A stretch of 64,000 bases of DNA from Paragordius varius (GCA_964247055.1 OZ176057.1:4154001-4218000), one strand, 5' to 3'. Numbered from the stretch's first letter, positions 7,376 through 53,304 are shown. A program made the numbers and translations. Notes: a model not told the origin generated them from the letters alone.

Positions 7376-7435
7376 ATTTAACACAAAATTATTTTTATAA
7401 AGTAAAAAATTAAAATTATTAAATAAATTAATTTT

Positions 7436-7473
<38 letters not shown>

Positions 7474-12300: not shown

Positions 12301-13232
12301 AAATAAATTTGAAATTCTATAATTAAAATTAAATTCTAAGATAATACAATACATTGTTATAAAAAAGCTTTAATTGTCATATCCTTATATCTATTACTTG
12401 GATTTCTCAAACACCAGTGATTGTTCGGTACAGAGTTTTGAGGCCATTAAATAATAATTAAATTGGACCTCACAGAGTATACTATCGGTTCTTTTGTTTT
12501 TATATTTTTAAATCAGACCTGCGAAGTTTTGTGTAGGGGGCTCTGAAACATATCTCAATTAATATGCAACTCGTATGCTAAAAAGCTACCATTGACCTAT
12601 GATTATACCTGACAGTTTTCTTTTAAGGTAATAATCCAACTAAACAGATAATTTATTTCATATTAATTTAAATTTTGTAGATTTGATTTATTGGACCCGA
12701 ACAATCCGGATGATATGAAACGCTACATGCTTTCAGCCTTTGACAAAAATCATAATATTTATAAAGAAATGGGTTTGACCCCCTATAAAAATACATCCAA
12801 AGATCAAAAGAGGGATAAGTCAATGGTCGTGGTTAATGAACAAATTCATCAACATATAGGTTTTCATGCCAATCTGTCAAATGGTCATTTACCCTCTATA
12901 AGTATATTTCATAATGTTGTGTATAAAACTCCCTATTTGAGATAATTTTTTTTGAAAATGCGTTTTCTCTTATTCACAAAAAAGCATGGTCGGAATGGGG
13001 TGAATGGAGCCCTTGTAGTGTAGAATGTGGGAAAGGTTATCAAATGCGACAAAAACATTGCCAAGGACCTGCTCAGAGCTGTGGGGGATCCTTACTTGAT
13101 GTTCGAATATGCGAAGTTGTAGCTGAAACTGGGAAACCAAATCTCACCACCATCCATGACAACATACAAAGAGATGATTCAAACAAATATAACGAAACTC
13201 ATTTTTTAATCAAGAAATTAAATTTGAATTAG
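9321..13232 (+). CDS. Secreted Asn/Thr/Ser-rich protein with C-terminal TSP1 repeat, copy 1 (apparently intact)
   Basis: Phase-consistent exons 9321-9362 (MKNLFVIMIIMIYL, GTAAGG), 9450-9475, 9653-9793, 9960-10958, 12681-12901, 12985-13232; last exon has WSEWGEWSPCSVECGKGYQMRQKHC...C (TSP1 WxxWxxW and CSxxCG motifs). The two small 5' exons and the purine-rich acceptor of the last exon are less certain. Confidence 0.75.
11016..11430 (+). mobile_element. hAT-type MITE with two tandem ~129-bp internal units (11032-11290) in intron 4 of the TSP1 gene
   Basis: Starts CAGTGGTACTTAAAC (Charlie-like); contains gggccgcatt and tggcgggct subterminal motifs; degenerate right end gcgggctgcagtttg. Confidence 0.65.
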
Positions 13233-13463
13233 GCTAATATTATTTCACTTACAAACAAGCTTTTTCTTTTTCAAAAAATATAAAAAATAATACATTAATC
13301 CAAAACCATAATCGTATCTAAATTAAAAAAATATATTTATTAAATATGTTAAATAAACTTTTATAATGAAAGAGGAAGCATTCTGTTTTCATAACACAGG
13401 GTTTAATTTTCTACCGCAAAAAATGTGTTATACAAAAGTAATTACTCTCTCGTTTATACAATG

Positions 13464-15360
13464 TTAATTTTGTCTATGAAGAAAATTTTGTATATCATCG
13501 CGAGTTACCAGGACTTTGTTCAATAAATTAATATGGTATTTTTTGCTTTTGCCATCTTTATCATTAATGCTGTTGAATGAATTTGGATTTTTTTCAACAC
13601 ATTTCCGCGATAAAGATTTTGCATTGAAATGTCGACAAAATTTGTCCAAATTTTCCGTTTGCATAGCATTAATTTTTTTATGGTTAAAATTTATACCACA
13701 GTTATTACCATGAAATATCGTCCCCGTAGAATCTAAAGGATCAAAAGGAATAATAATGTTACGATTGCTCATAATAGTAGAAATTTGGAATTATTCGTGT
13801 AAACTTTTATTTAATTTATTTTAACATGATAAAAGTTTGTATTAGTAATATATATTGCACTATAAGTTAAAAAGTATATTCTCAAAGTATGAGAAATTAT
13901 CGAAAGCAATAATAAACTATTTTTTTTCCATAAATTTCGTTAAGATATAAAATAAATTTAACAAGTTTTACTTACCATTTTGATCCGAACCATCTATTTT
14001 TTTATGATTCAAGGTATGTTGTCCTTGAGGCAAAAGACTTAATGATAAGGAGCCAAGCACATTCTTACAAGCATTTGCATCATTTATTTCGTTATTTAAT
14101 TGGGTCCCTGTAAAATGTTGATGGGCTGACGTATTATAAGATATTTGTCCTACCTTACGATTTATATCGCTCCAACATGATGTATCAGCTGGATGATATG
14201 ATTGATTTCGGGGTGATGGATTATTCACATTGTAATTATCCAAATTAGTGGTATGGGTGTTTGGGGTGTAGATGTTATGTGAAATTCTTAAAAAATTTGG
14301 CTCTAATTCATTGTAACGTAAAGGATCTTCAAACGATTGTACTAAGGATGTTTTTTGCGGGCCGGGGTTGGATACCAATTTAGAGTCTAAATTAATTATG
14401 GGAAGTTGTTTAAATGAATCCTTGGCAAAACTATTGTTATCTCTATTGCCAACTTGGGAATTTTCATTGGTTGAAGAGGAGGGAATGTAAAATGTTGATC
14501 GAGAAAGTTTTTTCAAATCTAAATAATACTTTTATAAAGCTATAATGGGTATTTTTGAGATTAGATATTAATGTAATTTAAGTATCATTTTTATTTTGTG
14601 GTCATCAGTCTTAAAGATTATTTTTAATATTTTATAATTTATGATGTATTATTCGATATTGATTGATTATTATGTTAATGAAAATATACTAAATAATATA
14701 ATAAGCGTAAATTAAGGTATTTTATACCAAAATGCGGAAAACATTTTGACAAAAGGCATTCATAAAATGCCCGTCCAATTCCAATTTTTTTGAACAAACC
14801 AAAGCATTTTAAAAAACAAAATTAGGGCAAAAAAATAACCAGCATTGTTTAACTGATATGAGGAGCATTTTGATGGAAAAAGTCTCGTGAGATGTAAATA
14901 ATTGCAGGCATCAGAAAACGTTTTAGATCTCATGGGTGGTAATATTTGTGGTGTAGTTGTGTTAATTCTTTTTGTAATAAAGTTACATTATTCATGTTAA
15001 GCTCTAAATTATAATCCAAAATTTTGGCTTGAGAACAGGTCGAAACCGTTGAAGAATCGAAAAAACCTGTACCGTTTTCAGCGCAAATTTTATCCCTAAC
15101 ATTACCCATATACTTTTGAAGCGCATTCTGTTTTCCAGAATTTATGATTGACTCAAAATTGTAATTATTTGTTGTTTATTTTATACGTATTTTGACGCAT
15201 AAAATTGGACCCGATTCCGTATTATGTAAGGTGGTGTTTTGATTTGACAAGTCATAATTTTTGTTTTTTAAATCCATGGTGGACTTAAAGAAGATATAGT
15301 ATATCAACATACGCATTTGGATTTTCTCTATAAATTCACTTTCGTTTATCATTTCATGAT
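13464..15360 (-). pseudogene. Orphan 3' exons of the OTUD7-like gene, copy 1
   Basis: Homologous to 51170-53136; exon 13968-14516 still open, but the upstream exon has a TAC-to-TAA stop near 15180 and a 7-nt deletion near 14958; no catalytic exons are attached. Confidence 0.85.
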
Positions 15361-15469
15361 CTAAACAAAATTAAACATGAAAAATATCCAAATTTAAGGT
15401 TATATTTAATAATACAAGATAATCTTATGTGAGACGGAAATACACAATTTATAACTGTTAAAAACTTAC

Positions 15470-15471
<2 letters not shown>

Positions 15472-15523
<52 letters not shown>

Positions 15524-15528
15524 TATAT
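15472..15528. repeat. (TA)n microsatellite at the X1/LINE junction
   Basis: Near-perfect TA run; equivalent runs at 34205-34251 and 53255-53301. Confidence 0.95.
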
Positions 15529-18500
15529 GGCCAACAAAGTCCTACACCTCCCCGCGGTCTTGGCTGGGGCATGAAAAGGCTCTAACGGCAAAGGCCAGTT
15601 TTCTAATGATCTATCATAAGTTATACACAAGGGCATGTTTTACGTAAAAAATTGCCTTAATAAAATTGAAGTATTAAAATGTTAAATATTAAAACCATAC
15701 CACTATCTCAAATAACAATAATAATCCAACTTATAATTATTTTAATATATCCTATTTACATTTTTATACACTTTATATTTTTTGATATATACTTTGAATA
15801 ATAATAATAACATACCAAAATAACTATGGATAAAATAAATGGTACCCTCAATAATAATAATAAAACAGTTCTGAAATTTGCCACATGGAATAAGGGTCAA
15901 TATATTTATGATAACAAACATTTTTAGCCAAAACAATATAGATAAATGTTGCATCCATGAGGCCAGATTAAAAGGTGAGGGATTGTAAAACTTAGACGAA
16001 TACACATTAGTCTATAAAGGAAATGACAAGGGTCAAGGTGGTGTTGCAATTTTTATAAAATACTATCGTGATAACATAATTGATATAATAAGACATAATC
16101 CAAAAATGATTCAAATAAAAATTTTGAGATTATGTATACGCACTTCAATCTGGTCTAAGCGAAACATGAAAAACGAATATTGGGACCATTATGATTTATG
16201 GAACAAAACTTCTGTTAGCGAATGAACTTTTGTTGGTGGTGCTTTTATTTGCCATATTAGTAATGATAACAATGATTAACATGGCGTTCATGGAGGAAAT
16301 GGTGGAACTCTCGATAAGATGGGTCAGAGTTTACTAGAATTTTGTAATGCAACTCAACTTTTAGTTTCAAATACCCATTAAAAACCAATCAGCATATAAC
16401 ATATAATTCTGGTGACCACTCATCTATAGACATCATATTACCTCCCAAAAATATTATGAAACATCTAACAAACATAAAAACTTACTATCAATTCTCTTAC
16501 CAACACAAGCTAACAACAGCATTTATAATTATTGAGAAAATCAATAAGACCGTATTTCAACCACAAAAAATAAATATAGCAAAATTAAAGCATCCAAAAT
16601 TATTATCCGAATATACTCAAAACATCGATTAAAATCTACCGGAACAAAACAATGTCGAAATTTTATGGTAAAATTTTATATCCAAAATTCTTACATCTGC
16701 TAAAAACCAGTGCGGCTTTACTAAACATACTGAGACAACGGAAAAGTTGGTGGTGGAAAAAAGATAAACCATTAATGCGGGAATGCGAAGCCTATAATAA
16801 ATGAAAATTTTCAAAAAGTAATGATGATAAAATAGTTAATAATGATAAAAAACGAGATGTTTAAAAGGCCATTCAACGCGCCATTAATGAAAAATCTGTT
16901 AAAATTACCGAAATAGAAAAAGACTTTAAAAACCAAACGATCTTTAATAGACTTAAAAACCCTAACTATAGTAAAAAAGATGTGAAACCATAAAATGTAT
17001 TAAAGATGATGATGATAATATATCAAATCCTTCGAAATTTCTATAAATTTGGAAAACGAACTTCGAAAAACAACTCAACCAAGTAATTCCGACCAATCAT
17101 TTTAGCACGGTTGCACCAGTAGCTGATTCCATACAAAAAATCACCATAGATGAAGACACAGCAATCAATAAATTAAAAAGCAACATCCAGGCCCCAGCCT
17201 TTCAGTCGACCTCATGCGACCCATCAAAGATACTGCAGAGTATCTGATTAAATTCTTTAACCAAATAATAATTACAAACCAAACTCCCAGATATTGGAAG
17301 AACATCATTAATTCTCATATATAAAATTAAAGCGATCGACTAAAAACATCCTACAGACCTCTGAACTTATGGAACACACACTTAAATTATTCGAAATTAT
17401 ATTAGAAAAGAAGCTGAGAAATCATATAAACATAGATTCAAATTAGTTTAAATTCCGTCCAAACAGTAGCACAATAGATCCCTTGTTTGTGCTAAGATGC
17501 TTACAAGAAAAATATCTGGAATAGAAACAAAAGCTATACCATGTTTATAGATCTGCAACGTGCGTTTGTTCAAATACCATGCTTCACAATTCAATGGGCA
17601 CTGCGTAAAAACGGAATAGAGGAACATACTATACTAATCATATTACTACTTTATAAAAAAACAACAACCAACATTAGAACCAATATCGGCAATACAAGCA
17701 ATTTTCCAACCAACGCTGGACTATATCAAGGTTCAGTCCTAAGCCCCCTTTTCATTGCTATAATGGATGCGGCAACGCAAGACATAAGAACCGAGTGCCC
17801 TTGGGCAATGTTATTCGCCAACGACCTTGTGATAACGACACGATCTTGGGATCAACTGGTAAATAATACCAAGTGGAAATGCCAGAACAATATGGAATGA
17901 TTATAAACCCGACAAAAACAAAAATAATGATAACGGTTGAAAGTGATACACCCAGATACCCTGCTCCATTTGCAGAATGAATGTAGGTTCAAATTTCATT
18001 AAATGCATATCATGTCAAATGTAACTACACAAAAAGTGCTCTAAAATAAAAGGCAAGTTAACAAATGCAATAAATTTAAATGTTTAAATTGTTTAGACCC
18101 CAGTAATAATAATTTGAATCCATTAAAGTTACCTAACATTGATGGTCATAATATCAAATTGGTAGACTCTTTTGTTTACTTAGGAGATGTAACATCTCAA
18201 GGCAGCCTACAAAAGGATTTTGAAAGAAGAATCCAACAAGCTTGGATATAATATAATAAGATATGTTTTACAAAACAAAAATATTAACAATAATAATAAA
18301 TGGTATTCAAAGCAGGCATAAGACCAGCTCTTACCCATGGTTCCACTTGGGCATGCAAAACTAATCAAACAAAACTCCTAACTAGTGAGAGCCGAATACT
18401 CAGCTGCTTTTTCACATTAGAAATACCAACTTTTTAGTAAAAAATCCGATAAAATCGATTATATTATCCAAACTAAGAGATTGCATCTCTACGGTCATAC

Positions 18501-18593
18501 TCGAAGAAGAGACGCCACATACCTTTTAAAAACTGTTGAAAACATTAATGTTGGTGGCAAAAGAAGAAAGGGGTGACCACTCATTTCTTATAA
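15529..18593 (+). mobile_element. Decayed RTE-clade non-LTR retrotransposon (AP endonuclease + RT), 3'-truncated, copy 1
   Basis: LKFATWN and GQGGVAIFIK (endonuclease), HGVHGGNGG...GQSLLEF...VSNTH, FIDLQRAF...GLYQGSVLSPLF...PWAMLFAND (RT; catalytic ADD changed to AND), FVYLG, RLHLYGH...GKRRKG*P; many stops and frameshifts. Confidence 0.92.
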
Positions 18594-21524
18594 TCTATAT
18601 ATTTATAAAAATGGAAAACGCATGCTTTGTGATCTGTTTCCGGAAAACCGGTAGACCCATTCAATACCAAATGTCGAAAAATAAACGTTAATGAATGCAA
18701 CGACCATAGCTTATATTGGTCCCCAGTTCGGGCCCACCTCGTGTAAAAAACGGTTTTTTTTTGAAAACATAAGTCCATAAAAATCGGGTCTATGAGACAA
18801 TTTTGCGGAAAACGTGTTGGACCATTCGATTTCAAATATTTTATTTCTTTACTTTTTTCGATTTCGCCGAACATAGTCGGCTCGCTTTTTTAATCTAGGC
18901 CCTCTTTTTACCCGCTCCCACCGTAAAATGCCATTTTTTTTAAAAAAATTGTCTACAAAAATAATTTTGAATCTATTTTTGGCCCAGGGTATGAGACCGT
19001 AAAAATTCAATAAGGACCCAGGGATTCCCTGTTTAAGGGTGAAAATTTTAGTCGTGCGTTTTTTTTAATTGGCTGCTGGGTAAGGAGATACCCGCTAAAA
19101 ACTGCGCCATCATTTCGAAATAGCGTGCCTTTGGGGCTGAATTTCAGAAAACCTATCAAGCCATATGAGTCAATTGGTTTTTAAAATGTTACCCGCAACA
19201 AGGCAAAAATTTAGGTCGTACGGTTTTTTGATTAGCCGTTAATTAAGCCGCCCTGAAGAATGCGCCACCATAGAATGATTTTTTAGTTTTGAAGCCATTC
19301 TTCCAAAAACTATTAGGAACATAAGGAATCAATCATGATTCCATGTATACTCCGTAAAAAGGCAAAAAATTTTATCGAGTGTTTTTTGTTTAACCCTGGT
19401 TAGGGGGCTACTTGCGTAAAACTGCTTCACCATATCGATAAAGCATTCATTTGGAGCCAAATTTCAGAAAACTTATGAGTCTAATTGGAACATATGAATA
19501 TGATAATTCCAGATATTTACCCCATATAAAGGCAATAATTTTGCCCAATGCATTTTTTATATCTGCCCCAGTAAGGAGCTAACCGCCAAAAACTGCGCCA
19601 CTATATGAAAATTGCCTTGTTTTGGAGCTAATTTACAGAAAATTTATAAAACCATATGAGCTCATTAAAAGCTTGAAATATTACCAGTAACTAGTTAATA
19701 AAAGTTAAACCTTTTTTTATTAGCCGTTAATTTGGAGCCTTTATGTCCTAAAAAGCCATCATTTAACGATTATTTAGTGTTGAGGTTTTTTTCGAACCCA
19801 TGAGACGATGGTATCAAAGAGGATTCCAAATATTTGCTTTATAAGGGCAAAGAATTTAACTCATCGCTTTTTCCATATAGGTCTATGGGTAGGGGTCTAC
19901 CGGTTCAAAAATGAGACGCCATACAAAAGTGGTTTTGGAGCTAATTTTCAAAAAACTTAAGAAGCCATACGAGTTCAGTTAAACACATTTCTGGGGAATT
20001 TGTGCAATATTCTTTCCTTTTAAAAGGGACCACAAATGATTAACTTTTTATAATTGATCCCGCTGTGTGAAAATTTTGAAATAAAACTTTTAACTATGAT
20101 TTCGAAAAACAAAAAGCTTAAAATACCAATGATTGTTGAATAATAACTTAAATAAGGGATAAATATGCTCAATTGCGAGTAAACAATATTTGAGCCTATG
20201 CTAAAACCCGTGAATGTAATTAAAGACTTATTTAATATGTTTTCTATTTGTTTATCTCCATTACCTCTACTAAGTCCACAAAAATTGTGTCTTTGAGGCA
20301 ATTTACCGGAAAACGTGTAGGACATTCGAATTCAAATATGATTTTTATTTACTTTATTTTGATTGGGCCGAACATAGTCAGCTCGCTTCTTTAATTTAGG
20401 CCTCTTTTTACCCGCTCCCCCCGTAAAATGGCTTTTTTTCAAAAAACAAAGTCCACAAAAATATTTTTTTGATTCTATTTTCCGCCCAAAGTATGAGACC
20501 GTAAAATTCAAAAAGGATTCCAGGTATTTTCTGTTAAAAGGCAAAAATTTTAGTTAAGCGTTTCTATGATAGCTGCTGGGTAAGGAGATACCCGCTAAAA
20601 ACTGACCCGTCATATTGAAATAGCGCGCCTTTGGGGCTAAATTTCAGAAAACCTATCAGACCATATGAGTCAATGGCTGCTTAAAGTATTACCCGTAACA
20701 AGGCAAAAATTTAGATCTTGCGGTTTTTTAAAATTAGCGGTTAATTAGGCCCTTCACGCGCTGAGAAATGTGCCACCATAAAATGATTTTTGAGGCAATT
20801 TTTCCAAAAACTACATATGGTCAATCATGATTCCAGGTATTCTCCGTAAAAAAGCAAAAATTTTAATCAAGCTCTTTTTTGTATCAGCCACTGGGTAAGC
20901 TACCCGCCAACTGCGCCACTATATAGAAATTGCGTTGTTTTGGAACTAATTTAAAGATTATGCCATATGAGCTCATTTATAGTTCGAAATAGTACCCGTA
21001 ACGGGGTAATTAAGGTCAAACCTTTATTAATTAGCCGTTAATTTGGGGGTTTTATGTCCTAATAGTACGCCATCATTATTTAGTGTTGAGGTATTTTTTC
21101 GAATAACCCATCAGGCGATGGTCTCAAAGATGATTTCGAATATTTTCCCTATAAATCAAAAAATTTAACTTAGCTCTTTTTCCATACAGGCCTATGGGAA
21201 AAGGTCTACCGAGACGCTATACAAAAATGGCGTGGCTTGGAGCTAATTTTCAAATGTAAGAAGCCATACTTCAAAAACGGCTTTGAATATTACCCATTAA
21301 AAGGTAAAAATTATAGTATAGCGGTTTTTTCCGTTAGCCGTCAATTTGGGGCCTTTACACCAGTGAACAATATAGTATGAATGCACCGTTTAGAAAATCC
21401 TATGATATCATAGTATTAAATAATGTTTCGAAATAATCCACAAAATCCCTTTTTATAGCCCCCTCCCCCCATCCGCCCTGGAAGTCCGAAGGACTTCCTA
21501 GGGAGCATCAAGAATTTACGCTAG
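18594..21524 (+). mobile_element. Non-autonomous Helitron with an internal ~160-bp satellite, copy 1
   Basis: A|TC 5' end (tctatatatttataaaaatg), 3' hairpin ggaagtcc-gaa-ggacttcc followed by CTAG|T, no TSD; no Rep/helicase ORF. Confidence 0.85.
18771..21370. repeat. Degenerate ~160-bp monomers arranged as two higher-order units about 1.5 kb apart
   Basis: aaaactgcgcca-like anchors at about 19097, 19257, 19418, 19588, 19750 and 19907; block starting aagtcca at 18771 recurs at 20272 (offset 1501). Confidence 0.8.
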
Positions 21525-21892
21525 TTATAATTAAAACTCCGTTTTATCAAAAAATATGTATTTTTTATTTAAAAGTAAATAATTCTCCCTTCATGTTTAC
21601 AATTCGTGTTTAGTATACATCCAATATTGAATTTTATATTCAAGTATACATAAGCCTATATTATCACTAATTATTTTGGAGGAATTGCAGAACGGTTGTT
21701 TAATACTTTTAAAACATTTTTTGTTAATAAAGGTCTTATAAAATAAGCACCTGATTTTATGGATCCAGAATGTTATAAAAAATTTTAAACATCATATCAC
21801 ATAAAAATACAATATATAATTATTTATATGACGTTAAGCTTAAGTATTTATAAAATTTCAGAGCATACACAGTATATAGCACACATAGTGGA

Positions 21893-24800
21893 TTAATTAT
21901 CAATTATCATAGTCGTGCTGGTGTCAGGAGTGATGTCCGTTAAAGTTGTTGAGTTATCATTATATTCATCAACACTGCCACCGTTATCAACATTGGCTGG
22001 TAACAAAAGTCTTCTCGTACTTAGGAGTAAAGAGTTTCGCCGTACACTCGTGATTCGAGATAAAACATTTCTTCTGGTTGTCGTTCTACGTGTCGCTCTT
22101 GGAGTAGTCCGACGGCGTCTACGTTGGGTTATTCGAGATGTTCGAGGGCGAAATCGCATAGTTTGACGTCTCCGACGACGTGTTGTAAGAGGACTTCTCA
22201 TTCTTCGAGTAGTAATAGTCCGTGGAGATGCGCGGCGCCTTGTAGATCTGGTTCTCACCCGTGGTGTAAATCTGGAAAAAATAGTCCGTATTTTGGGTCT
22301 GGCCTTCGTAGTCGTGTTTATTCTCACTAATTTGCAAATTAAAAAGGGTACATCATTAGATAGGATCCGTTAAAACTGCATTAAGAAATATTTCGACTTA
22401 ATAAAAAATATAAACATATTTTTATGCGTTATATGAAATACAGTAAAAACTGAAATACGGACAAAACGTAAAAATATAAAAACAAATATTTTTTTCTAAA
22501 AGACAACCATTTTTAAATCTTAAATTATTTCAATATAATTCAATGTTTTAAATGGCAAAGTATTTAGAGATATATATTAAATACAATTAATTCTAATATT
22601 TTTTAATTGTAGAATGGCTTATATAAAAAAATAGGTTTTAAAAAGTTCTGTATTCAACTTTTACTGTATTTGCATTTTATCGATTATCAATATTAATTTA
22701 ATTTTTAATATTATGATTGGTTAATTTGCATATTTACCAGCAGTATATATTTCCGTTTGTAGTTTTCATAAATTATTTACACATGAATGATATTATCAGC
22801 GCTTAGGCCGACCAGTTTGTAATTTATGGAGGACCGAAATTAAAAATATTTCTTGGCTTTTGCATCAATTTTTAAACAGATAGTTATTTAACAATAGAAT
22901 ATATGTCTTTATATGTGAGAAGATTAAGTAATAAATTTAGCATCAAAGCAGTAAAGAGCTGCCTAATAAAATTTTGTACGACAAAAGTTAAATAATATAA
23001 ATTATGATTAAATTATGTAATCTTACCTGAGGTCGTGGCGGAAGGGCTAACCCCGGTTGAAATGGACGAGAGAGAACTGGTTTGACCCATAATGGTAGCG
23101 TTTGATGAAAGAGTAGTAACTGTGCTGCTAATCGATACAACTGGACTTGTAACCATAGTAGGGGTGGTAGCAGACGCAATTGTAATGGAAATCATTGAAG
23201 AGGAGGATGAGGCTGTGGACATTGAAGTCGACGACATTGAGGTTGAGGAGTCAGTCGTTGATGGGGTCACTGGATCCACTGAAAAACAAACATAATAATA
23301 TACAGTTTAGTGTCGTATTTTTTCTTTTTGACGACCATAACAAAGAGTAATTAAGAGAGAAACTTATGAAAGTTTATTACAACCCCTTGAGGTCTGACAG
23401 AGATGGAAAAAATGCGCAGTTTTAGGATTTGAACTATGCCCCCACATAGTGTAAGAGTATGGAGTCTTGCCCAAATATACCATAAACTTAGATCACGTTC
23501 ATGAATTACAAAATGCAATAACATTGGAGAAAGAAGCGTTGTTAAATATAAAACGGAAAATTAAATTAATGTGCCAATATTTTATCATTTAAAAAAATAA
23601 ATAAAAATCAAACTAGTAACCCATATCAGGGATCAGAACCCAGTACTTAACCCAGTAGTGGTGTTCTAATAGGTTAAATCTAGTTCTGGGTCCTCTTTGT
23701 CATAAGAACTAATTGTAAAAGTTTTGATGGCCAATTATCCCAAAATAATTTCCTTTTAATGATTATTTTAAAAGATAGATAAATTGGTTATATAAAGGGT
23801 TAAAAAAGATTTAGAAATATGTGAGTTTTAAAAACAAGTGTTTAAAAATAAAATATAATATTTAGTTTGGTCTTTCAATAAAATGACAGAATGCAATTTT
23901 TATTTGTAAGGTAATAGCATGAATAAAAATTAGCATTCCTAAAAATGTAATAGGACATCCTAAAGATAGCAATATACGTTTTACTAACTATGTTATGTCA
24001 TATTTTTTTATAAGGAAGGTACAGGGTTGGGCAAAGTGCTAATATACACCATATACAGTAAATCGAAACTATACGGACCAAATGAAAAAATATAAAGACC
24101 ATTTTTTTTCCAAAAGACAACCATACTTTTGACCCTAATCGATAAAAATTATTTAATTACAATCATAAAATAATTAATTGATTGTGTTACCAATTTACAT
24201 TCTATATTATATTTTGTAGCTTAAAACAATGAGTTATATATTAAGAAAATCAAGATAAAAAAGTATGGTTTATCTTTTAGAAAAAATATTTGTTTTTATA
24301 TTTTCACGTTTTCTCCGTATAATTTCAATTTTTACTGTATATTCTTCGTTTTTTTAGGAAATACTTAAGGCAATGACTAGATGTTTTTCGTACGTTAACG
24401 ATAGAATCGCCTTGAAAGATATGCGCATTATAGCAAATGAACCTAATTTACACGGGATACGACGTGGCTAATCAAAAGATGTGAGTGATTGGCACGTTCA
24501 TTTAGATAATTTATCCATTATTCCCTATGGGTTTACATATTTCTTTAAAAATGTTTCAAATAAATAAGGAACTTTCAATTTTTAAACGGATGGGCTGAAA
24601 ATGGCTAACTTAATAATATTTCTGGTTTTAGGAGCAGTTATAAATAACAATTTATTTGATGGGCCCACACGTTTTCAAGAATATAACATCAGGCCAACAT
24701 TTGACATTAAACCCATAGATATTATTTGGTAAAAATATAATACAAAAAAACTTAATTTGAGAATAAGGATATTTTATATTATCTGGGTCCATCACCCCTT

Positions 24801-26302
24801 CACTACCACATGGAAAGTGAATTATTATGCACCACACTAAAAATTATATTTTTTACTTATGATGCTTTTTAAGAGGATGGGGTGAAATTGACTTAAAAAC
24901 TACGATATATGGAAATCTAACAAAAGGTCCGAACCACCGTCTGTCTTCATAAATGAACTTTTCATTGTTTCCGATATTGCTTCCAAGACACAATCATTAG
25001 GCCCCTTTTTTGAAAAAAACCCTATTTTAACACGGAAGGGGCTTAAAATAGGGGCTAATAACTCCAATAAATAGCGCATTACAGTATAAGATTATTGAAT
25101 TTAAAATATGCTTTAAAAAATTTATTTGCTTCCATCATTTAAAATTATTATTATATATGCATCAAATAAAAAAATACAGACAATCTTGATAAACATAAGC
25201 AAAATTTTAAAAAATGATTTTAATAAAATTATATCTTATGAGCTACCTGCTAAAGTTATAACATCCTGTTCAATTTTTAAAACTTGTTTCCGGTTTCAAC
25301 TTTATCGCACGGTTCTATTTTTCCCACGTCTAATATTTTATGTGTAACATATTTTAGTGATTTTAACATAAGCCAAATATTTTTGATTTACCAAGAGCCC
25401 AATAAATAAGTTTTACAATAACCATTAATCATTACACCATTTGTCAAAAATCCTTGAAAACTTCATGATGAGTCTTGATAATTTTAAAGTGCCCTAAACG
25501 CTTCTAGTTTTGAGCACTTGAATTCTTTTCGGACATTTTAATTGGACATTGAACACTTTAAATTGGTAAACGCTTAAAGTTGGTCCTTAAATATTTTTAA
25601 GTTAGCGCCTCCATGATTTTTGCATATATTTTTTTATTTTTTAAATTAATATTATAAAAAAACAAAGTTTAGGTTTCAAACTTATTTTTGTGCCATTCAA
25701 TAATATTGAAAACTTATTGATAGTTTTAAAAGAATGCAATTATAACCTAAAAACCTAATTGTTCTTTGATTACCTTAAAACCCTCAGTACAATTAAAATT
25801 TTTGAACAGTTTAGGTTATAAAAGATATTTATATAGTTTGATTGATAAGAATTATATGCAAAATAAAAATGTTAAAAACACAATTGTGTAAGGATCAACT
25901 TGAAGTGTTTATAGATTCTCGAGGACGAAGAAGTTTTAAAGGCTTTTGAAGTGCAAATGGTATATAAACATTTGGACGGATTATGAAACCATAGATTTAT
26001 AAGGTTAATTCTAGTTGATAGGTTAAATTACCATTTTTTTATTTTAATATATTTGTACATAATTTTGGTTATTACATCATTAAAAATAAAGTGCTATTTT
26101 CCTTAAAGGTAGTTTATAAGATTTGGCTTATTCTTCGTTTGTGGATTCAAGTTAGAAACTACGCTTCATGCACAGAATTAAACATTATTTCGAAATTTAG
26201 TTTACCATGGGCATAAACCAGCTTCGGGAATAATAAAATCCATAGATAGATTAAAATTGAACAGGTATTAATAATAAGATTCTGTTGGGATAAGCGAGCC
26301 AT
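21893..26302 (-). CDS. Secreted Ser/Thr- and Arg-rich protein, copy 2 (intact, 260 aa)
   Basis: Exons 26206-26302 (MARLSQQNLIINTCSILIYLWILLFPKLVYAH), 23027-23278 and 21893-22326; both introns GT-AG phase 1; total 783 nt with a single terminal stop. Confidence 0.85.
22441..22666. mobile_element. Tc1/mariner-like MITE (CAGTAAAA TIR)
   Basis: ta|cagtaaaa ... ttttactg|ta. Confidence 0.8.
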
Positions 26303-27234
26303 TTTATCAAAATTACATTATAAAGTAAAAAAATAAGTTACCAAATAAAATAATTATATATATATAATATATATATATATATAATTATATTAATTTATTG
26401 ATTGTGTTAAATAACTTTGAAATAAATATTGTTTATATTCTTCACTCGGGACTTTTATTACTTCAAAGTTAAGCTTTTGCGACACATTACATCCTATTTT
26501 GTGATTGATTAAATTATTTAAAAATAATATGTAGTGTTATGTGTAAAATAACATGGTAAAATGGATTACCTTGATTATATGTGTTGTCGAAATATAAAAA
26601 TATTTATCAAAATGAATTTGCAAAGGTCACATAGAAATGACTCAAAAATGACATTATTACAAAAAAAAACAGACTAATACGGCACCAATAAAATCGATCA
26701 TTTAGAGTGAAAACTTTTGTTTTAAAAAACTAACTACTATAAACACAATACATCATTTATGTTCGGTTAATAATGACCTTCTAAATCATTATTCATAGGT
26801 ATTATAAATATTGATTATGTGGAAAAAATTGTTTTTATATTATATTTAAATATTCCTTGTAAAATTTTGGTCATGATTGTTATAGCTTCAACAAAATTTT
26901 CAAATTAACATTGAATCACGTCCTTCGTTAGTTTTAACATTAAATAAAATATGACAAAAATGTGAAAATAAAATTTAGGGATTGGGTTTCTGATCCTTGA
27001 TAGTTTGGGTTACTAGTTCAATTATTATTTATTTTTTAAATGATAAATTGGCACATTAATTTGATTTTCCGTTTTATATTTAACAACGTTTCTTTATGCC
27101 ATCTATGTAGTGTATGGTATATATCAAGCTAGACTCTAAACACTTTTATGTGAGGGCACAGTTCAAATCATAAAACTATGAATTTTTTGCATCACTGTCA
27201 GACCTCAAGGGGATGCTGTAATAAACTTTCATAA
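23364..27234. repeat. Inverted repeat pair (arms about 23364-23642 and 26980-27234), copy 2
   Basis: Same arms as 5519-8329; also at about 42075-42353 and 45691-45945. Confidence 0.85.
24056..24337. mobile_element. Tc1/mariner-like MITE of the CAGTAAA family, present in copies 2 and 3 only
   Basis: ta|cagtaaa ... tttactg|ta with longer imperfect subterminal inversion; paralogue at 42767-43048. Confidence 0.8.
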
Positions 27235-28238
27235 TTTATATGTTAAGGATCCAAATGTTTTGCAAGACTTGGAGTTGTGATATGCTTACGATTGAAATTA
27301 TAAATTATATCGATAAATCAAAACAAAAATAGATGATTCTCGATACTTGCCTATATTTTTTTAACTTGTTTGTCCTAATTAAACATAATGGGGTAGTTTT
27401 TATTCTTAAACTTTTTATAAAACTGTTTTAAAGTTATTTTAGTTAAAATTTAATTATCAAACATTGTTCTCATGTATTATAAAAACTTTTATTTTTTACA
27501 GCTTTATAATTTTAGGCCTTAAATTGGGACAGCTCCTGAACATGATTGGAACGAACAGCTGATATTTAAAATCAAAATATATAGTTTTTGCTGGTAAAAT
27601 GCAGCCTCAAAGGGTTTTAAGACAATTATTTACAAAACCATAATATACATTTATTTCCCTGTTGTATTAACGATTAAAAAATAAAAATAGATATAGTGGC
27701 GTTCATAAAAAAAAATCTGTAATGCGCTAAAGGCAAAGAAGTATCCCAAAGACTTTTTAAGATATTCAAGTTTAAAATCGCTCTGGGATATAAATCTAAA
27801 ATCATGATTGTTAATAACATAAAATGGCTAAAATTTTAAATATATTCGTAATAATAGAAAAAATATTTCCAAAATAAATTTTTACCGATTTTGATTTATT
27901 TTAAAATACTTAGGTTTCATTAACCAATTCATAGGTATAATAATTACTCGTAATTTCAGTAAATGCACCCTTTGATAAATTAAAACAAAATTTAAGAAAA
28001 TAATACTTTATCACACTTTGTTTTAATAATTTCAACATGGTAATTTGCAGATCAAAAATTTTTTTGATTTCAATACTAATAACTCTTCAAAAAATAATGG
28101 CAAAACCCCTGATCAGCTGTTTTTTTATGTGTGTTCGTCATTTTGATTTAAAGTTCACTGAACGATTTATAGTGGCCTAATTCTAGTCATAACTTCAATA
28201 TATTTATTAAATTATATAATGAAAACTTGTTTGTATTT

Positions 28239-31200
28239 ATGATCATAATGATTTATCTAGTAAGGTCGTAGGTTAAGCCAATTATTATTGGAAAAAATAA
28301 TTAAGGATGACCCGTCGTTAACGATTATTAATTACAATTATTTTAGGTAAAAATGGTTGAAAGCCAATTCTAGTAATTGTTAATACTTAACCGAAATAAT
28401 TTGATATAATTAATTTTAACCTGTTTTTAGGATCGAATAGCTATTGTTATAAAACCGCACTCTTGCCATTAGCCATTTTTTATAAACTCAAGGATTATTT
28501 GGATTGAACAATGTTATAATTGCATTTTAATTGGAGTTTACAGCGTGTATAGAAGTTATTTGATTTTAGATAATAATTCCAATTCCATCACTTCTAATTG
28601 GTTCCAAGCCATAGCCGGACGCCTTATTGCTAAGTTGACCAGATTGAAAGACTCAAATTTAACAAACTTTAACTTAAATAATAGGTATATACCCCAATAA
28701 TTGACACTTTTACATAACACATTTTTTTAAACGATATGAGAAATTAATTTTGAAAAGTTGTGCATTGTAAATGTTATCCCAAATTGGATTTATTAAATTT
28801 TAGAATATTTCGGTTTTGATTCTATTAAATTTAATTATATATTATATAGTTTACTGCAACCACACGTTCTTAACACTAAAATCTTCAACTTCGAGCACAA
28901 AATTATACAATACTCAAAGTTTATACCTGAATTTGCCAGACAAAACTTAAACGCAACCAAAAGCCTTCTTGAATCTACAACACTAGATGAGAATTCTATT
29001 CCTATGTACAATGCATTGACGATAATTAAAAATTTGACACAGTCTAATTCCAGCAAACATGAAATGAATTTCGGATTTAAAGATATGGCTGAAAGAATAA
29101 CATTGGAAGAAAGTTCAGTTTTGCCGCTCACAAATTTGGATAACACATTTCATTTTGAAAATAAGGAACTCATTGACACAAATATGAATAAATTAAATTT
29201 CTATACGTTTGAAACCAACAACCAAACAGAATATATCGTTATATCAAACCAAAATATAAGTTTGAGCACCAATTTTGGCACGCAAAATAATTTAATAAAC
29301 GCAGAACGGAGGTCAACAACCAAAACACCACAAACAGGAAATCTAACTCAGGACATGATTTTTTTGGAAAGCCTTTAAAAATACTTCTAATGTTAGTCAG
29401 TCATCTGATAAACTTAATCAAAATTTTAAATATACTACCCCATTCTATTCGATTCCTGTAAATCATGGTAACATTGCAACAAATACACTAAAATTATTGT
29501 TAAATCTCAAACCGTCAAAAACAATAAGAATGGTTACCATTTTTAATTTAATCAATAATTTTACAACACCTTTACCACAAACTAAAAGCGCTGTTGGGCA
29601 CAGTTATAATTCTCCAAAAAATATTTTAAGCAATCACTTATACAAAACGGAAGATTTCAATATCTTGTTTGGGGGCGAAAGCAAACTTGAAAAACCCGAT
29701 TTTTATAAAAATCAAGCCTTTACCATGACCACACCTCCGAATATACCGTTAGAGGAAATCGTTAAAATTAAGCACAAATCCCACAAGCATGGCGGTTCAG
29801 GATCTGACTTTTCTTACACAAGAGATTTAAATAATAAGTTTGTTATGAAACTTTATATAATACAGAGCTTGACCATGATAGATTATGAAAGTTGAATCAG
29901 GGATAATTAAACCAAATGGTTTCCGGGCCGCATTTTTGTTTCAAAACTGGCGGGCTACATTCCTAAATTATATGGGCAATAATGAACATTTTAATAGATT
30001 TTAGATATTATACTGTAAAAAATTACAAAAACCCTATTTAAAATTTATTTTGAAAAGATTTATTAAAAATAACTTCAAGAAACATCAATTTTTGTACTGT
30101 AAATAGCATATTAAATTATGAGATGATTGCCTATTTTTTCGCGGGCTGCACAATTGGGACAGAAATTTCCCAAAAGTTTCTAGAAAATCTTCAATTGATT
30201 TATCTTAATAAGTCAAGTTTTTTCAAATGACATTTATGACTAGAATAAATAAAACCCGTTCCCATTAGACAAATTATTTTTTAATAAAATAATTATATTA
30301 CATGCAATAAAATATTTTAAACAAAGACCCCAACATTGACAAATTGTGTTTAAATAGGCTCTTGTCCTTGAAAGTAAACAAATATCTACAATGGGATATA
30401 TTATATGGTTTAATTTTATATTGCACCATACCAATAGTTGAAAACATACCTTATATATAAAAACTTCTTATATAAAATAATGGCGCCAACATTAGCTCCT
30501 AGAATTTTAAGAAAGATTAAATTGAACGCAAATATATAAATATCTAAATTTATTAATATACGATTGCTATTGAATTGCACAAACATATTGTTGATTTTTA
30601 CTATAACATACACCTTCTTCGTGAAAACGCCTTAAGCTTGTTTTAAATGCAAGATATCTATCTCGATAAATTTACGAAACCTATTTTTTGTAAGCCTATG
30701 AAAAACCGAAACGGTTTGGATAATATATATATTTATATTAACAAAATTAGCTTTATTAAGCATATAACTTTTAAAAAATTTGACATGATGTGCGCTAATC
30801 TATCAATGTTTGGATTGGTCAATTATAGATTTTCATTTTCTAAAATCAATTTTATCGCAAACTATAATAATTATTTCATTTAAACTTAAATATAATCCCT
30901 AAAAAATATTTCTTAAAAAAAATTAAAAATATCGATTGTATGCACCAAGAGAACATGCAGGCCTCTGAGACGTTCTGTACAGCCAGCGTAAAAATAAAAA
31001 AATACCAAACAAATTTGAAATTATAAAAATTAAGATTAATTCTAAGATAATACAATACATTGTTATAAAAAAGCTTGAATTGTCAGATCCTTATAACTAT
31101 TACTTGGATTTCTCCACCAGTGATCGTTCGGTAAAGAGTTTTTATGCCATAAGACAATAATTAAATTGGACCTCACAGAGTATACTATCGGTTCTTTTGT

Positions 31201-31915
31201 TTTTATATTTTTAAATGTGACCTGCAAAGTTTTGTGTAGGGGGCTCTGAATATCCTAATTAATATGCAACTGGTATGCTAAAAAGCTACCATTGACCTAT
31301 GATTATACCTGACAGTTTTCTTTTAAGGTAATAATCCAACTAAACGGATAATTTATTTCATATTAATTTAAATTTTGTAGATTTGATTTATTGGACCCGA
31401 ACAATCCGGATGATATGAAACGATACATGCTTTCAGCTTTTGACAAAAATCATAATATTTATAAAGAAATGGGTTTGACCCCCTATAAAAATACATTCAA
31501 AGATCAAAATAGGGATAAGTCAATGGTCGTGGTAAATGAACAAATTCATCAACATGATGGTTTTCATGCCAATCTGTCAAATGGCCATTTACCCTCTATA
31601 AGTATATTTTAAAATGTTGTGCATAAAACCCCTTATTTGAGATAATTTTTTTTGAAAATGCGTTTTCTCTTATTCACAAAAAAAGCATGGTCGGAATGGG
31701 GTGAATGGAGCCCTTGTAGTGTAGGATGTGGGAAAGGTTATCAAATGCGACAAAAACATTGCCAAGGACCTGCTCAGAGCTGTGGGGGACCCTTGCTTGA
31801 TATTCGAATTTGCGAAGTTTTAGCTGAAACTGGGAAACCAAATCTTACCACCACCATCCATGACAACATACAAAGAGATGATTCAAGCAAATTTAACGAA
31901 ACTCATTTCTTTTGA
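28239..31915 (+). pseudogene. TSP1-repeat secreted protein, copy 2 (large exon frameshifted)
   Basis: The exon starting at 28850 is broken into ORFs 29004-29378 and 29497-29895 by indels; the upstream ATG is out of frame (atgaaaact vs atgaaaaact); the TSP1 exon is intact. Confidence 0.75.
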
Positions 31916-32166
31916 ACAAGAAAATAAATTTGAATTAAGTTGATATTATTTCACTTACAAACAAGCTTATTCCTTTTTAAAATATAAAAAATAATACATT
32001 AATCGAAAACCATGACCGTATCTAAACTATTGAAAAATGTATTTATTAAATATGTTAAATAAATTTCCATGATGAAAGAGGAAGCATACTGTTTTGATAA
32101 CATAGGGTTTAATATACCGGAAAAAATGTGTTATACAAAAGTAATTACTCTCTCGTTTATACAATG

Positions 32167-34120
32167 TTAATTTTGTCTATGAAGAAAATTTTGTATATCA
32201 TCCCGAGTTACCAGGACTTTGTTCAATGAATTAATATGGTATTTTTTGCTTTTGCCATCTTTATCATTATTGCTGCTGCTGAATAAATTTGGATTTTTAT
32301 CGACACATTTCCACGATAAAGATTTTGCATTGAAATGTCGACAAAATTTGTCCAAATTTTCCGTTTGCATAGCATTAATATTATTATGGTTAAAATTTAT
32401 ACCACAGTTATTATCGTGGGATATCGTCCCCGTGGAATCTAAAGGATCAAAAGGAATAATAATATTATTACAATTATTTGTGATAGTAGAAATTCGAAAC
32501 TATTCGTAATAACTTTTATTCAATTTATTTAACATGGTAAAAGTTTATTTTAGGAATATGTATTGCACTATAAAAAAAGTATCTTATAGTATGAGAAATT
32601 ATCAAAAACAATAATAAACTATATTTTTTTATAAATATCGTTGGGATTTAAAAATTAAAAAGTTTAACATGTTTTACCTACCATTTTGATCGGAACCATC
32701 TATTTTTTTATGATTCCAAGTATGTGGTCCTTGAGGCAAAAGACTTAATGATAAGGAGCCAAGCACATTCTTACAAGCATTGGCATCATTTATTTCGTTA
32801 TTTAATTGGGTCCCCGTAAAATGTTGATGGGCTAACATATTATGAGTTATTTGTCCTACCTTACGATTTATATCGCTCCAACATGATGTTTCTGCTGGAT
32901 GATATGATTGATTTCGGGGTGATGGATTATTCGCAATGTAAATATCCAAATTAATGGTATGAGTGTTTGGGGCGTAGATGTCACGTGAAATTCTTAAAAA
33001 ATTTGGCTTTAATTCATTGTAACGTAAAGGATCTTCAAAGGATTGTACTAAAGATTTTTTTGCGGGCCGGGGTTGGATACCAATTTAGAGTCTAAATTAA
33101 TCTTAGGAAGTTGTTTAAATGAATCCTTGGCAAAATTATCTCTAATATTGCCAACTTGGGAATTTTCATTGGTTGAAGAGGAGGGAATGTAAAATGTTGA
33201 TCGAGAAAGTTTTTTCAAATCTAAAAAATTACAGCAAAATATTATAAAAAAATTGTGTACAATTAATGTAATTTAAGTATCATTTTTATTTTGTGGTCAT
33301 CAGTTTTACAGATTAACTTTAATATTTTAGATGTATTATTTGATATTGATTGATCATTAATTTAAATAAGAGGGAGAAACCAAAATATGAAGGTTTTATG
33401 TTAATGCAAATATATTAAATAATATAATAAGCGTAAATTAAGGTATTTTATACCAAAATGCGGAAAACATTTTGACAAAAGGCATTCATAAAATGCCCGT
33501 CCAATTCCAATTTTTTTGAACAAACCAAAGCATTTTAAAAAACAAAATTAGGGCAAAAAAATAACCAGCATTGTTTAACTGATATGAGGAGCATTTTGAT
33601 GGAAAAAGTCTCGTGAGATGTAAATAATTGCAGGCATCAGAAAACGTTTTAGATCTCATGGGTGGTAATATTTGTGGTGTAGCTTCAGGTTGTGTTAATT
33701 CTTTTTGTAATAAAGTTACATTATTCATGTTAAGCTCTAAATTATAATCCAAAATTTTGGCTTGAGAACAGGTCGAAACCGTTGAAGAATCGAAAAAACC
33801 TGTACCGTTTTCAGCGCAAATTTTATCCCTAACATTACCCATATACTTTTGAAGCGCATTCTGTTTTCCAGAATTTATGATTGACTCAAAATTGTAATTA
33901 TTTGTTGTTTATTTTATACGTATTTTGACGCATAAAATTGGACCCGATTCCGTATTATGTAAGGTGGTGTTTTGATTTGACAAGTCATAATTTTTGTTTT
34001 TTAAATCCATGGTGGACTTAAAGAAGATATAGTATATCAACATACGCATTTGGATTTTCTCTATAAATTCACTTTCGTTTATCATTTCATGATCTAAACA
34101 AAATTAAACATGAAAAATAT
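32167..34120 (-). pseudogene. Orphan 3' exons of the OTUD7-like gene, copy 2
   Basis: Same TAA stop as copy 1 near 33910 and a 1-nt frameshift near 33055. Confidence 0.85.
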
Positions 34121-34202
34121 CCAAATTTAAGGTTATATTTAATAATACAAGATAATCTTATGTGAGACGGAAATACACAATTTATAACTGTTAAAAACTT
34201 AC

Positions 34203-34246
<44 letters not shown>

Positions 34247-34251
34247 TATAT

Positions 34252-37200
34252 GGCCAACAAAGTCCTACACCTCCCCGCGGTCTTGGCTGGGGCATGAAAA
34301 GGCTCTAACGGCAAAGGCCAGTTTTCTAATGATCTATCATAAGTTATACACAAGGGCATGTTTTACGTAAAAAATTGCCTTAATAAAATTGAAGTATTAA
34401 AATGTTAAATATTAAAACCATACCACCATCTCAAATAACAATAATAATCCAACTTATAATTATTTTGATAATATATCCTATTTACATTTTTATACACTTT
34501 ATATTTTTTGATATATACTTTGAATAATAATAATAACATACCAAAATAACTATGGATAAAATAAATGGTACCCTCAATAATAATAATAAAACAGTTCTGA
34601 AATTTGCCACATGTAATAAGGGTAAACAATATATTTATGATAACAAACATTTTTAGCCAAAACAATATAGATAAATGTTGCATCCATGAGAGGTGAGGGA
34701 TTGTAAAACTTAGACGAATACACATTAGTCTATGAAGGAAATGACAAGGGTCAAGGTGGTGTTGCAATTTTTATAAAATACTATCGTGATAACATAATTG
34801 ATGTAATAAGACATAATCCAAAAATGATTCAAATAAAAATTTTGAGATAATGTATACGCACTTCAATCTGGCCTAAGCGAAACATGAAAAACGAATATTG
34901 GGACCTCTATGATTTAATGAACAAAACTACTGTTAGCGAACGAACTTTTGTTGGTGGTGCTTTTATTTGCCATATTAGTAATGATAACAATGATTACCAT
35001 GGCGTTCATGGAGGAAATGGTGGAACTGATAAGATGGGTCAGAGTTTACTAGAATTTGGTAATGCAACTCAACTTATAGTTTCAAATACCCATTAAAAAC
35101 CAATCAGCATATAACATATAATTCTGGTAACCACTCATCTATAGACTTCATATTACCTCCCAAAAATATTATGAAACATCTAACAAACATAAAAACTTAC
35201 TATCAATCCTCTTACCAACACAAGCTAACAAGATCATTTATAATTATTGAGAAAATCAATAAGACCGTATTTCAACCACAAAAAATAAATATAGCAAAAT
35301 TAAAGCATCCAAAATTATTATCCGAATATACTCAAAACATAGATTAAAATCTACCGGAACAAAACAATGTCGAAATTTTATGGTAAAATTTTATATCCAA
35401 AATTCTTACATCTGCTAAAAACCAGTGCGGTTTTACTAAACATATGAGACAACGGAAAAGTTGGTGGTGGAAAAAAGATAAACCATTAATGCGGGAATGC
35501 GAAGCCTATAATAAATGAAAATTTTCAAAAAGTAATGATGATAAAATAGTTAATAATGATAAAAAACGAGATGTTCAAAAGGCCATTCGACGCGCCATTA
35601 ATGAAAAATCTGTTAAAATTACCGAAATAGAAAAAGACTTTAAAAACCAAACGATCTTTAATAGACTTAAAAACCCTAACAATAGTAAAAAAGATGTGAA
35701 ACCATAAAATGTATTAAAGATGATGATGATAATATATCAAATCCTTCGAAAGTTCTATAAATTTGGAAAACGAACTTCGAAAAGCAACTCAACCAAGTAA
35801 TTCCGACCAATCATTTTAGCACGGTTGCACCAGTAGCTGGTTCCATACAAAAAATCACCATAGATGAAGACACAGAAATCAATAAATTAAAAAGCAACAT
35901 CCAGGCCCCAGCCTTTCAGTCGACCTCATGCGACCCATCAAAGATACTGCAGAGTATCTGATTAAATTCTTTAACCAAATAATAATTACAAACCAAACTC
36001 CCAGATATTGGAAGAACATCATTAATTCTCATATATAAAATTAAAGCGATCGACTAAAAACATCCTACAGACCTCTGAACTTAACACACACTTAAATTAT
36101 TCGAAATTATATTAGAAAAGAGGCTGAGAAATCATATAAACATAGATTCAAATCAGTTTCAATTCCGTCCAAACAGTAGCACAATAGATCCCTTGTTTGT
36201 GCTAAGATGCTTACAAGAAAAATATCTGGAATAGAAACAAAAGCTATACCATGTTTATAGATCTGCAACGTGCGTTTGTTCAAATACCATGCTTCACAAT
36301 TCAATGGGCACTGCGTAAAAACGGAATAGAGGAACATACTATACTAATCATATTACTACTTTATAAAAAAACAACAACCAACATTAGAGCCAATATCGGC
36401 AATACAAGCAATTTTCCAACCAACGCTGGACTACATCAAGGTTCAGTCCTAAGCCCCCTTTTCATTGCTATAATGGATGCGGCAACGCAAGACATAAGAA
36501 CCGAGTGCCCTTGGGCAATGTTATTCGCCAACGACCTTGTGATAACGACACGATCTTGGGATCAACTGGTAAATAATACCAAGTGGAAATGCCAGAACAA
36601 TATGGAATGATTATAAACCCGACAAAAACAAAAATAATGATAACGGTTGAAAGTGATACACCCAGATACCCTGCTCCATTTGCAGAATGAATGTAGGTTC
36701 AAATTTCATTAAATGCATATCATGTCAAATGTAACTACACAAAAAGTGCTCTAAAATAAAAGGCAAGTTAACAAATGCAATAAATTTAAATGTTTAAATT
36801 GTTTAGACCCCAGTAATAATAATTTGAATCCATTAAAGTTACCTAACATTGATGGTCATAATATCAAATTGGTAGACTCTTTTGTTTACTTAGGAGATGT
36901 AACATCTCAAGGCAGCCTACAAAAGGATTTTGAAAGAAGAATCCAACAAGCTTGGATATAATATAATCAGTTAAGATATGTATTACAAAACAAAAATATT
37001 AACAATAATAATAAATGGTATTCAAAGCAGGCATAAGACCAGCTCTTACCCATGGTTCCACTTGGGCATGCAAAACTAATCAAACAAAACTCCTAACTAC
37101 TGAGAGCCGAATACTCAGCTGCTTTTGCACATTAGAAATACCAACTTTTTAGTAAAAAATCCGATAAAATCGATTATATCATCCAAACTAAGAGATTGCA

Positions 37201-37308
37201 TCTCTACGGTCATACTCGAAGAAGAGACGCCACATACCTTTTAAAAACTGTTGAAAACATTAATGTTGGTGGCAAAAGAAGAAAGGGGTGACCACTCATT
37301 TCTTATAA
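34252..37308 (+). mobile_element. Decayed RTE-clade LINE, copy 2
   Basis: Nearly identical to 15529-18593, including the FAND change and the 3' truncation point. Confidence 0.92.
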
Positions 37309-40235: not shown

Positions 40236-40603
40236 TTATAATTAAAACTCCGTTTTATCAAAAAATATGTATTTTTTATTTAAAAGTAAATAATTCTCCC
40301 TTCATGTTTACAATTCGTGTTTAGTATACATCCAATATTGAATTTTATATTCAAGTATACATAAGCCTATATTATCACTAATTATTTTGGAGGAATTGCA
40401 GAACGGTTGTTTAATACTTTTAAAACATTTTTTGTTAATAAAGGTCTTATAAAATAAGCACCTGATTTTATGGATCCAGAATGTTATAAAAAATTTTAAA
40501 CATCATATCACATAAAAATACAATATATAATTATTTATATGACGTTAAGCTTAAGTATTTATAAAATTTCAGAGCATACACAGTATATAGCACACATAGT
40601 GGA

Positions 40604-50910: not shown

Positions 50911-51169
50911 TCAAGAAAATAAATTTGAATTAAGTTGATATTATTTCACTTATCTACAAACAAGCTTTTTCTTTTTCAAAAATATAAGAAATAATTCATT
51001 AATTGAAAACCATAACCGTATATAAACTAAAAAAATATATTTATTAAATATGTTAAATACACTTTTATAATGAAAGAGGAAGCATTCTGTTTTCATAACA
51101 TATAGGGTTTAATTTTCCACCGGAAAAAAGTGTTATACAAAAAGTAATTATTCCCCCGTTTACACAATG

Positions 51170-53250: not shown

Positions 53251-53304
<54 letters not shown>

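Follow-up and report, generated by a model that had tools for sequence, protein, structure and literature searches.

A tandemly triplicated orphan gene that probably encodes an arginine-rich, plausibly secreted protein

We report the analysis of an orphan gene, probably real and protein-coding, which is triplicated, with one copy broken, inside a 64-kb window (the whole stretch of DNA that was analysed, 64,000 nucleotides), neither fact having been part of an earlier note on this DNA. Our preferred reading, which is held tentatively and at a probability of roughly 0.38, is that this is a real, lineage-restricted gene whose product would be a secreted, disordered protein acting intact as a glycosylated extracellular polycation. 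On this reading the gene survives as two intact copies of identical sequence, B and C, alongside a copy A that was broken recently.

The gene model was built on copy B and consists of the following features, where '/' marks a splice junction here and below:

26302-26206, minus strand: exon 1, signal-like; 97 nt, ATG and 32-codon peptide, phase-1 donor G/GTAAAC
23279..26205, minus strand: intron 1; 2927 nt, holding dispersed inverted-repeat elements
23278-23027, minus strand: exon 2, Ser/Thr-rich; 252 nt, mucin-like, non-repetitive, one NAT sequon
22327..23026, minus strand: intron 2; 700 nt, GTAAGA...AAATTAG, phase 1
22326-21893, minus strand: exon 3; 434 nt including the TAA, encoding an Arg/Thr block, a Leu-rich stretch and an acidic tail

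The earlier note had proposed that three exons join in frame to give 260 amino acids, and the arithmetic bears this out: 97 + 252 + 434 nt make 783 nt, or 260 codons and a stop, with both junctions in frame and both introns of the GT-AG type in phase 1. The donors read ATG/GTAAAC (intron 1) and CAG/GTAAGA (intron 2) and the acceptors TTTTTCAG/ (intron 1) and AAATTAG/ (intron 2). In a conserved HSP70 gene from this genome, 11 introns begin with GTA or GTT and mostly end in TAG, and the GTA donors and TAG/CAG acceptors of the orphan gene resemble them. The acceptor of exon 2 is strong and fully conserved, and an upstream exon is therefore needed; the exon chosen is the most hydrophobic of 34 candidates of the form ATG..GT in phase 1 that lie upstream of exon 2 within 5.7 kb. 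Its counterpart in copy A retains the ATG, the frame and the donor, so that the description of exon 1 as signal-like holds. Hydrophobic ORFs arise easily in AT-rich DNA, a caveat that attaches to this exon. In copies B and C, exon 3 offers no start codon ahead of residue 43, and an alternative acceptor upstream of this exon, AATGCAG, was discarded as it leads to a stop after six codons. From the sequence we infer that the three exons are spliced together.

The window, which does not resemble human DNA, has a GC content of 28%, spliceosomal introns and one reverse-transcriptase fragment; Rfam, run on the whole of it, gave no matches. Against this background exons 1, 2 and 3 form GC islands of 34, 48 and 44%. 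The arginine frame is the sole open frame of the six in exon 3, and it stays open in only 0.035% of shuffles of that exon, which is beyond what chance would give. The remaining frames of exon 3 were rejected, each having stops or a worse pN/pS, as was a 72-aa alternative frame, which carries three TAG codons in copy A and has no other paralogues. A simple-repeat origin of the arginine block was likewise set aside, since TRF finds no tandem repeats in the exons and six different arginine codons are used in exon 3. Codon usage and GC3 are similar to those of the HSP70 genes of this genome, and because those genes also prefer CGN for arginine, odd codon use as a mark of foreign or recent origin is ruled out.

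The copies and their neighbours are arranged as follows:

3809..53300, no strand: tandem array; about 2.65 units of about 18.7 kb, with unit starts near 3809, 21522 and 40233
7279..7375, minus strand: copy A exon 1; intact, 7 substitutions, peptide stays hydrophobic
5176..5433, minus strand: copy A exon 2; intact, 6-nt insertion keeping the frame
4169..4602, minus strand: copy A exon 3; broken, also with an in-frame 3-nt insertion
44917..45013, minus strand: copy C exon 1; identical to B
41738..41989, minus strand: copy C exon 2; identical to B
40604..41037, minus strand: copy C exon 3; identical to B
9925-11013 and 47523-48611, strand not given: 362-aa exon (ORF); no homologues or domains
13464-14516 and 52502-53155, minus strand: other array ORFs; no homologues or domains

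Within the window, the array thus carries the three copies of the gene together with other orphan ORFs. The three exons occur together and in order at these three places only in the 110.6-Mb genome assembly (44 contigs, with animal-type HSP70 genes elsewhere in it), and no exon matches were found outside the array in those 110.6 Mb. Since every ORF of the unit is confined to the array, a dispersed transposon as the carrier is ruled out. The neighbouring ORFs too occur solely in the array, with the broken copy of each gene lying in a different unit, and this pattern is the usual birth-and-death of tandem duplicates. A route to an orthologue by synteny through the 362-aa ORF fails, as that ORF has no homologues either.

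Copy C lies at the position of copy B plus 18711, and the two show 100% identity across some 8.2 kb (about 20,400-28,600), the units being otherwise about 96% alike; this identity could stem from gene conversion of recent date, from a partial duplication that happened very recently, or from an artefact of the assembly. Copy A, in which intron 1 is about 1.1 kb shorter than in copy B, is disrupted twice in exon 3. Two nucleotides are absent at the acceptor, which puts the arginine frame out of phase with exon 2 (reading on from exon 2 in phase 1 stops after eight codons), and a 1-nt deletion leads to an early stop at 4297-4299 with loss of the tail.

Between copies A and B the mismatch is 3.2% in exon 3, 7.1% in exon 2 and 7.2% in exon 1, against 13-15% and many indels in the introns (15% in intron 1); the difference between exons and introns is significant (Fisher P = 2e-14), though exon 1 itself, at 7.2% versus 9.0% in its 5' flank, is hardly better conserved than its surroundings. 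Nine of the 14 substitutions in exon 3 are synonymous in the arginine frame, and when the same base changes were placed randomly nine or more were synonymous in 0.2% of the permutation trials (P about 0.002), a test that rests on two independent sequences (A, and B identical to C) and these 14 substitutions. The five replacements (T/M, K/R, T/S, Q/R and R/Q) are mostly conservative and so preserve the charge. At 0.20, the pN/pS of the arginine frame is the lowest among the six frames, and the indels in diverged stretches of the exons, of 3 nt and 6 nt, are in frame. Taken as a comparison of sequences, these data indicate that the arginine frame is probably under purifying selection. Long tracts of identity between A and B suggest gene conversion, which could explain part of the low exon divergence.

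These same data bear on the question of whether the locus does anything at all. It might be functionless, a decaying or never-translated young family whose ORFs survive through recent duplication and homogenising gene conversion, and we consider this unlikely. Such a history would accommodate the two frame-breaking lesions of copy A, from which the family may be decaying, the conversion-like tracts shared by A and B, the lack of homologues in the word search and with phmmer, and the broken copies found also among the neighbouring orphan ORFs; furthermore, the identity of B and C over 8.2 kb means that the second intact copy brings no independent evidence. It accommodates less readily the synonymous excess in the arginine frame, the in-frame indels of the diverged stretches and the retention of at least one intact copy of every gene in the array. 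Nor does it sit well with exons 2 and 3 having 44-48% GC and normal codons in 28% GC DNA, for AT-biased drift would erode such islands.

Database searches and folding were carried out exon by exon. Neither family nor structure emerged from searches of the exons against Pfam (E up to 1), NCBIfam, PDB sequences and the ESM Atlas, and a word search that took exon 3's open frame of 158 aa as its query, with a target size of about 260 aa in range, gave no match. The single match returned by phmmer from 1.84 billion representatives (P0001, E = 8.5e-6) was judged spurious, since it amounts to one weak alignment over 43 residues, repeated six times, against a repeat protein in which acidic residues lie opposite arginine. 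The earlier statement that no family can be recognised is upheld, with no credible match in any of these searches, and we found no described counterpart of the gene in the literature. An HSP70 exon from the same genome has best protein-database matches of 87% or lower, spread across many animals, which marks the source as an animal; the databases thus seem to lack the species, and the absence of relatives is for this reason weak evidence. The empty searches mean that relatives went undetected, if there are any, and are not evidence that the gene is young. On the sequence as it stands, a lineage-restricted gene is the best reading.

The encoded protein falls into clearly distinct segments. The peptide of exon 1 has an n-h-c, signal-like layout and ends in VYA-H at the junction; by rule-of-thumb scoring it shows Arg3, an uncharged run from L9 to F25, Pro at -6 and V-Y-A at -3 to -1, and its best 12-residue Kyte-Doolittle mean is 2.58. 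Exon 2 is Ser/Thr-rich, as had been noted, with 29 Ser and 19 Thr among its 83 residues (48/83, 58%) and 5 Pro (6%), and with the signal-like peptide ahead of it this agrees with the composition of PTS domains (in a secreted protein, more than about 40% Ser plus Thr and at least about 5% Pro). The arginine block of exon 3 is as extreme as was claimed: 38 Arg (of 260 residues in the whole model) and 2 Lys lie in a span, free of Asp and Glu, that we measure as 105 residues (previously about 107), giving 36% Arg and a net charge of about +40, with 23 Thr and 9 Ser interleaved. Exon 3 contains two RRRRR runs, 8 RxxR sites, 15 RR pairs and 4 R-x-[KR]-R sites, and the block is followed by a Leu-rich stretch and then by the Asp-rich tail, 38 residues with 6 Asp and 1 Glu (net -7). 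The mature chain has no Cys. Folded alone, the exon 3 product is predicted to be disordered, with a mean pLDDT of 52.8, a pTM of 0.12 and one 12-residue helix. Three N-x-S/T sequons and one DEYND site are compatible with the secretory route, and secretion is plausible for the model as drawn.

If exon 1 has been misattached, however, the protein would stay inside the cell, and the Arg/Ser/Thr/Pro block might then bind nucleic acid there, in the manner of a sperm nuclear basic protein or of an arginine-rich domain of the RS or viral-core type. S/T-P sites amid arginines recall phospho-regulated arginine-rich domains, and the block, at 36% Arg, does hold several of them (RRRASPR, RSP, TTPR); exon 1, moreover, sits 2.9 kb from exon 2. 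We nonetheless regard an intracellular protein as very improbable, as exon 2 opens at an acceptor that requires an exon upstream, exon 3 of B and C offers no early start, exon 1 fits the phase and heads its 34 candidates, and Pfam reveals no protamine, RRM or other nuclear domain, while the Ser/Thr stalk, the sequons and the DEYND site would suit a secreted chain better.

The fate of the arginine block in a secretory pathway is the point at which we depart from the earlier note, which had proposed a precursor of cationic peptides, with an acidic tail that might mask charge. According to that proposal, a prepro-protein would be cut by furin/PC-type convertases at RxxR and dibasic sites to release antimicrobial, cell-penetrating or adhesive peptides. 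The sites listed above are abundant, convertases with a P-domain are encoded in the genome (PF01483 above cut-off at two loci), and one other Arg-rich, secreted-type orphan ORF was seen elsewhere in the genome, sharing no sequence with the orphan gene. In-silico cutting followed by carboxypeptidase trimming would, however, strip most of the charge: apart from one 28-residue N-terminal piece that retains +9, the products are mostly of 3-14 residues with charges of 0 to +4, and the peptide-release idea is poorly supported on that account. In addition, the exons hold neither a repeated peptide unit bracketed by sites nor conserved flanking sites (TRF), no anionic pro-piece precedes the block, and a tail of -7 could not mask or neutralise a block of about +40. 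Polyarginines, besides being substrates, are nanomolar-to-micromolar inhibitors of convertases, binding the acidic cleft of furin (PMC4482483), and O-glycans beside multibasic sites block its cutting (PMC11099032). All told, we think release of such peptides improbable.

The intact polycation is therefore favoured over the peptide precursor as the better fit. The protein would enter the secretory pathway by way of a cleavable signal peptide, probably cut after VYA, and the Ser/Thr stalk of about 85 residues could be O-glycosylated. The mature protein would otherwise be disordered, running from the stalk through the Arg/Thr/Ser/Pro block (105 residues, about +40) to the acidic tail (-7), and may bind polyanions electrostatically. 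Sulfated or phosphorylated matrix, a surface coat, material of the egg or cuticle, the surfaces of microbes and nucleic acid are examples of such partners, named here as guesses. Secretion, glycosylation and binding are here all read from composition and motifs. A protein with RRRRR runs that crosses a convertase-bearing Golgi would normally be expected to be cut, which goes against the intact reading, and O-glycans on the Thr and Ser among the arginine runs could limit such cutting.

Several known systems share parts of this architecture. In protamines and sperm nuclear basic proteins, arginine makes up roughly half or more of the residues. The orphan protein resembles them in its long arginine runs, in a block nearly devoid of acidic residues and in its predicted disorder, but its block has 36% Arg and is preceded by the signal-like peptide and the Ser/Thr stalk, where a protamine would be small and without a signal peptide, and the protamine family profile gives no Pfam match to exon 3 at E up to 1. 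Mucin-type PTS glycoproteins are likewise disordered, with Ser/Thr-rich, Pro-containing stretches after a signal peptide, as in exon 2; the stalk here differs in lacking tandemly repeated PTS units (TRF on the exons) and Cys-rich or other flanking domains, in its length of about 85 residues and in its fusion to a polycationic block. Cationic host-defence precursors (cathelicidin/PR-39, the apidaecin polyproteins, the arminins of Hydra) also combine a signal peptide with a cationic C-terminal part and many basic sites, and convertases are at hand in this genome, but the orphan protein lacks a pro-piece that is anionic or conserved, as well as repeated peptide units bracketed by sites, its in-silico products lose most of their charge on trimming, and neither Pfam nor phmmer gave a sequence match to such precursors.

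Two further comparisons concern the polycation itself. Blood-feeding arthropods secrete basic-tail proteins in which a folded, Cys-rich core carries a tail made up mostly of lysine. These proteins share with the orphan protein a floppy polycationic stretch on a presumed secreted chain, thought to dock on anionic surfaces, and differ from it in that the orphan mature chain has no Cys and no predicted fold, and its block is of Arg/Thr. The RRRRR runs are of the length at which polyarginine peptides (HIV Tat 47-57, hexa- and nona-arginine) enter cells and inhibit furin (PMC4482483), although those are short free peptides and the runs here would lie in a 229-residue, presumably glycosylated protein. 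Should the organism be a parasitic horsehair worm, a secreted effector may be imagined, a glycan-shielded poly-Arg convertase inhibitor whose runs enter host cells or block host proprotein convertases and so disturb the maturation of neuropeptides or immune factors; we rate this a distant long shot.

At present the gene appears to stand as one more taxonomically restricted gene for a low-complexity, putatively secreted protein. If it is expressed, an arginine density like that of protamines would be carried through a secretory pathway equipped with convertases, and the question would be how cleavage is escaped or exploited. The gene would also join other, unrelated orphan genes for Arg-rich, putatively secreted proteins in an animal lineage that has hardly been studied, and such a set could point to lineage-specific uses of polycations, be it in the matrix, for adhesion or defence, or in dealings with a host.

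The tandem array occupies positions 3809-53300 of the window and comprises ~2.65 units of ~18.7 kb each, every unit carrying several orphan ORFs, and the broken copy of each array gene sits in a different unit. The ORFs and repeated elements concerned are as follows.

9925-11013 and 47523-48611: 362-aa ORF, intact
~28835-29895: 362-aa ORF, broken
52502-53155: 217-aa ORF, intact at this position only
23380-23600, 27025-27215, 5532-5600 and 8122-8192, and their copies: inverted-repeat elements

Comparison of units 2 and 3 revealed an 8.2-kb tract (20400-28600 and 39111-47311) with 100% identity, the remainder of the two units being ~96% identical. Such a tract could have arisen by gene conversion or by a very recent partial duplication, or it could be an assembly artefact.

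A reverse-transcriptase fragment at 17541-17900 and 36251-36610 (Pfam RVT_1, E = 2e-7) has been duplicated together with the array unit, and is a dead retrotransposon piece that is older than the unit duplication. Directly downstream of the 362-aa ORF lies a short run of tandem repeats, ~129 nt in period (11032-11401 and 48630-49127), whose copy number is unequal between units 1 and 3. The inverted-repeat elements, of ~70-80 nt and 82-90% complementary, are dispersed across intron 1 and the upstream region of the main gene, that is, the three-exon gene for the putative secreted Ser/Thr and polyarginine protein; in appearance they resemble a dispersed element of the MITE type.

We also noted a 162-aa ORF at 60696-61184 on the minus strand, which gave no match to Pfam at E = 0.01; the DGNCLLHA motif at its end is typical for OTU-type cysteine proteases.

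Elsewhere in the same assembly, ~0.6 Mb away, a Gly/Arg/Phe/Asn-rich open frame (L018:266-511, plus strand; G000:C8:3556265-3556510) ends in Gly-stop; it shows no sequence similarity to the main gene and is unrelated to it. A conserved HSP70 paralogue (L015, G000:C7:4844300-4851000) is interrupted by no fewer than 11 introns, each 58-680 nt long, with TAG at ~9 of 11 acceptors and donors that read GTA or GTT with scant consensus beyond, and this gene serves as a local reference for splice sites.
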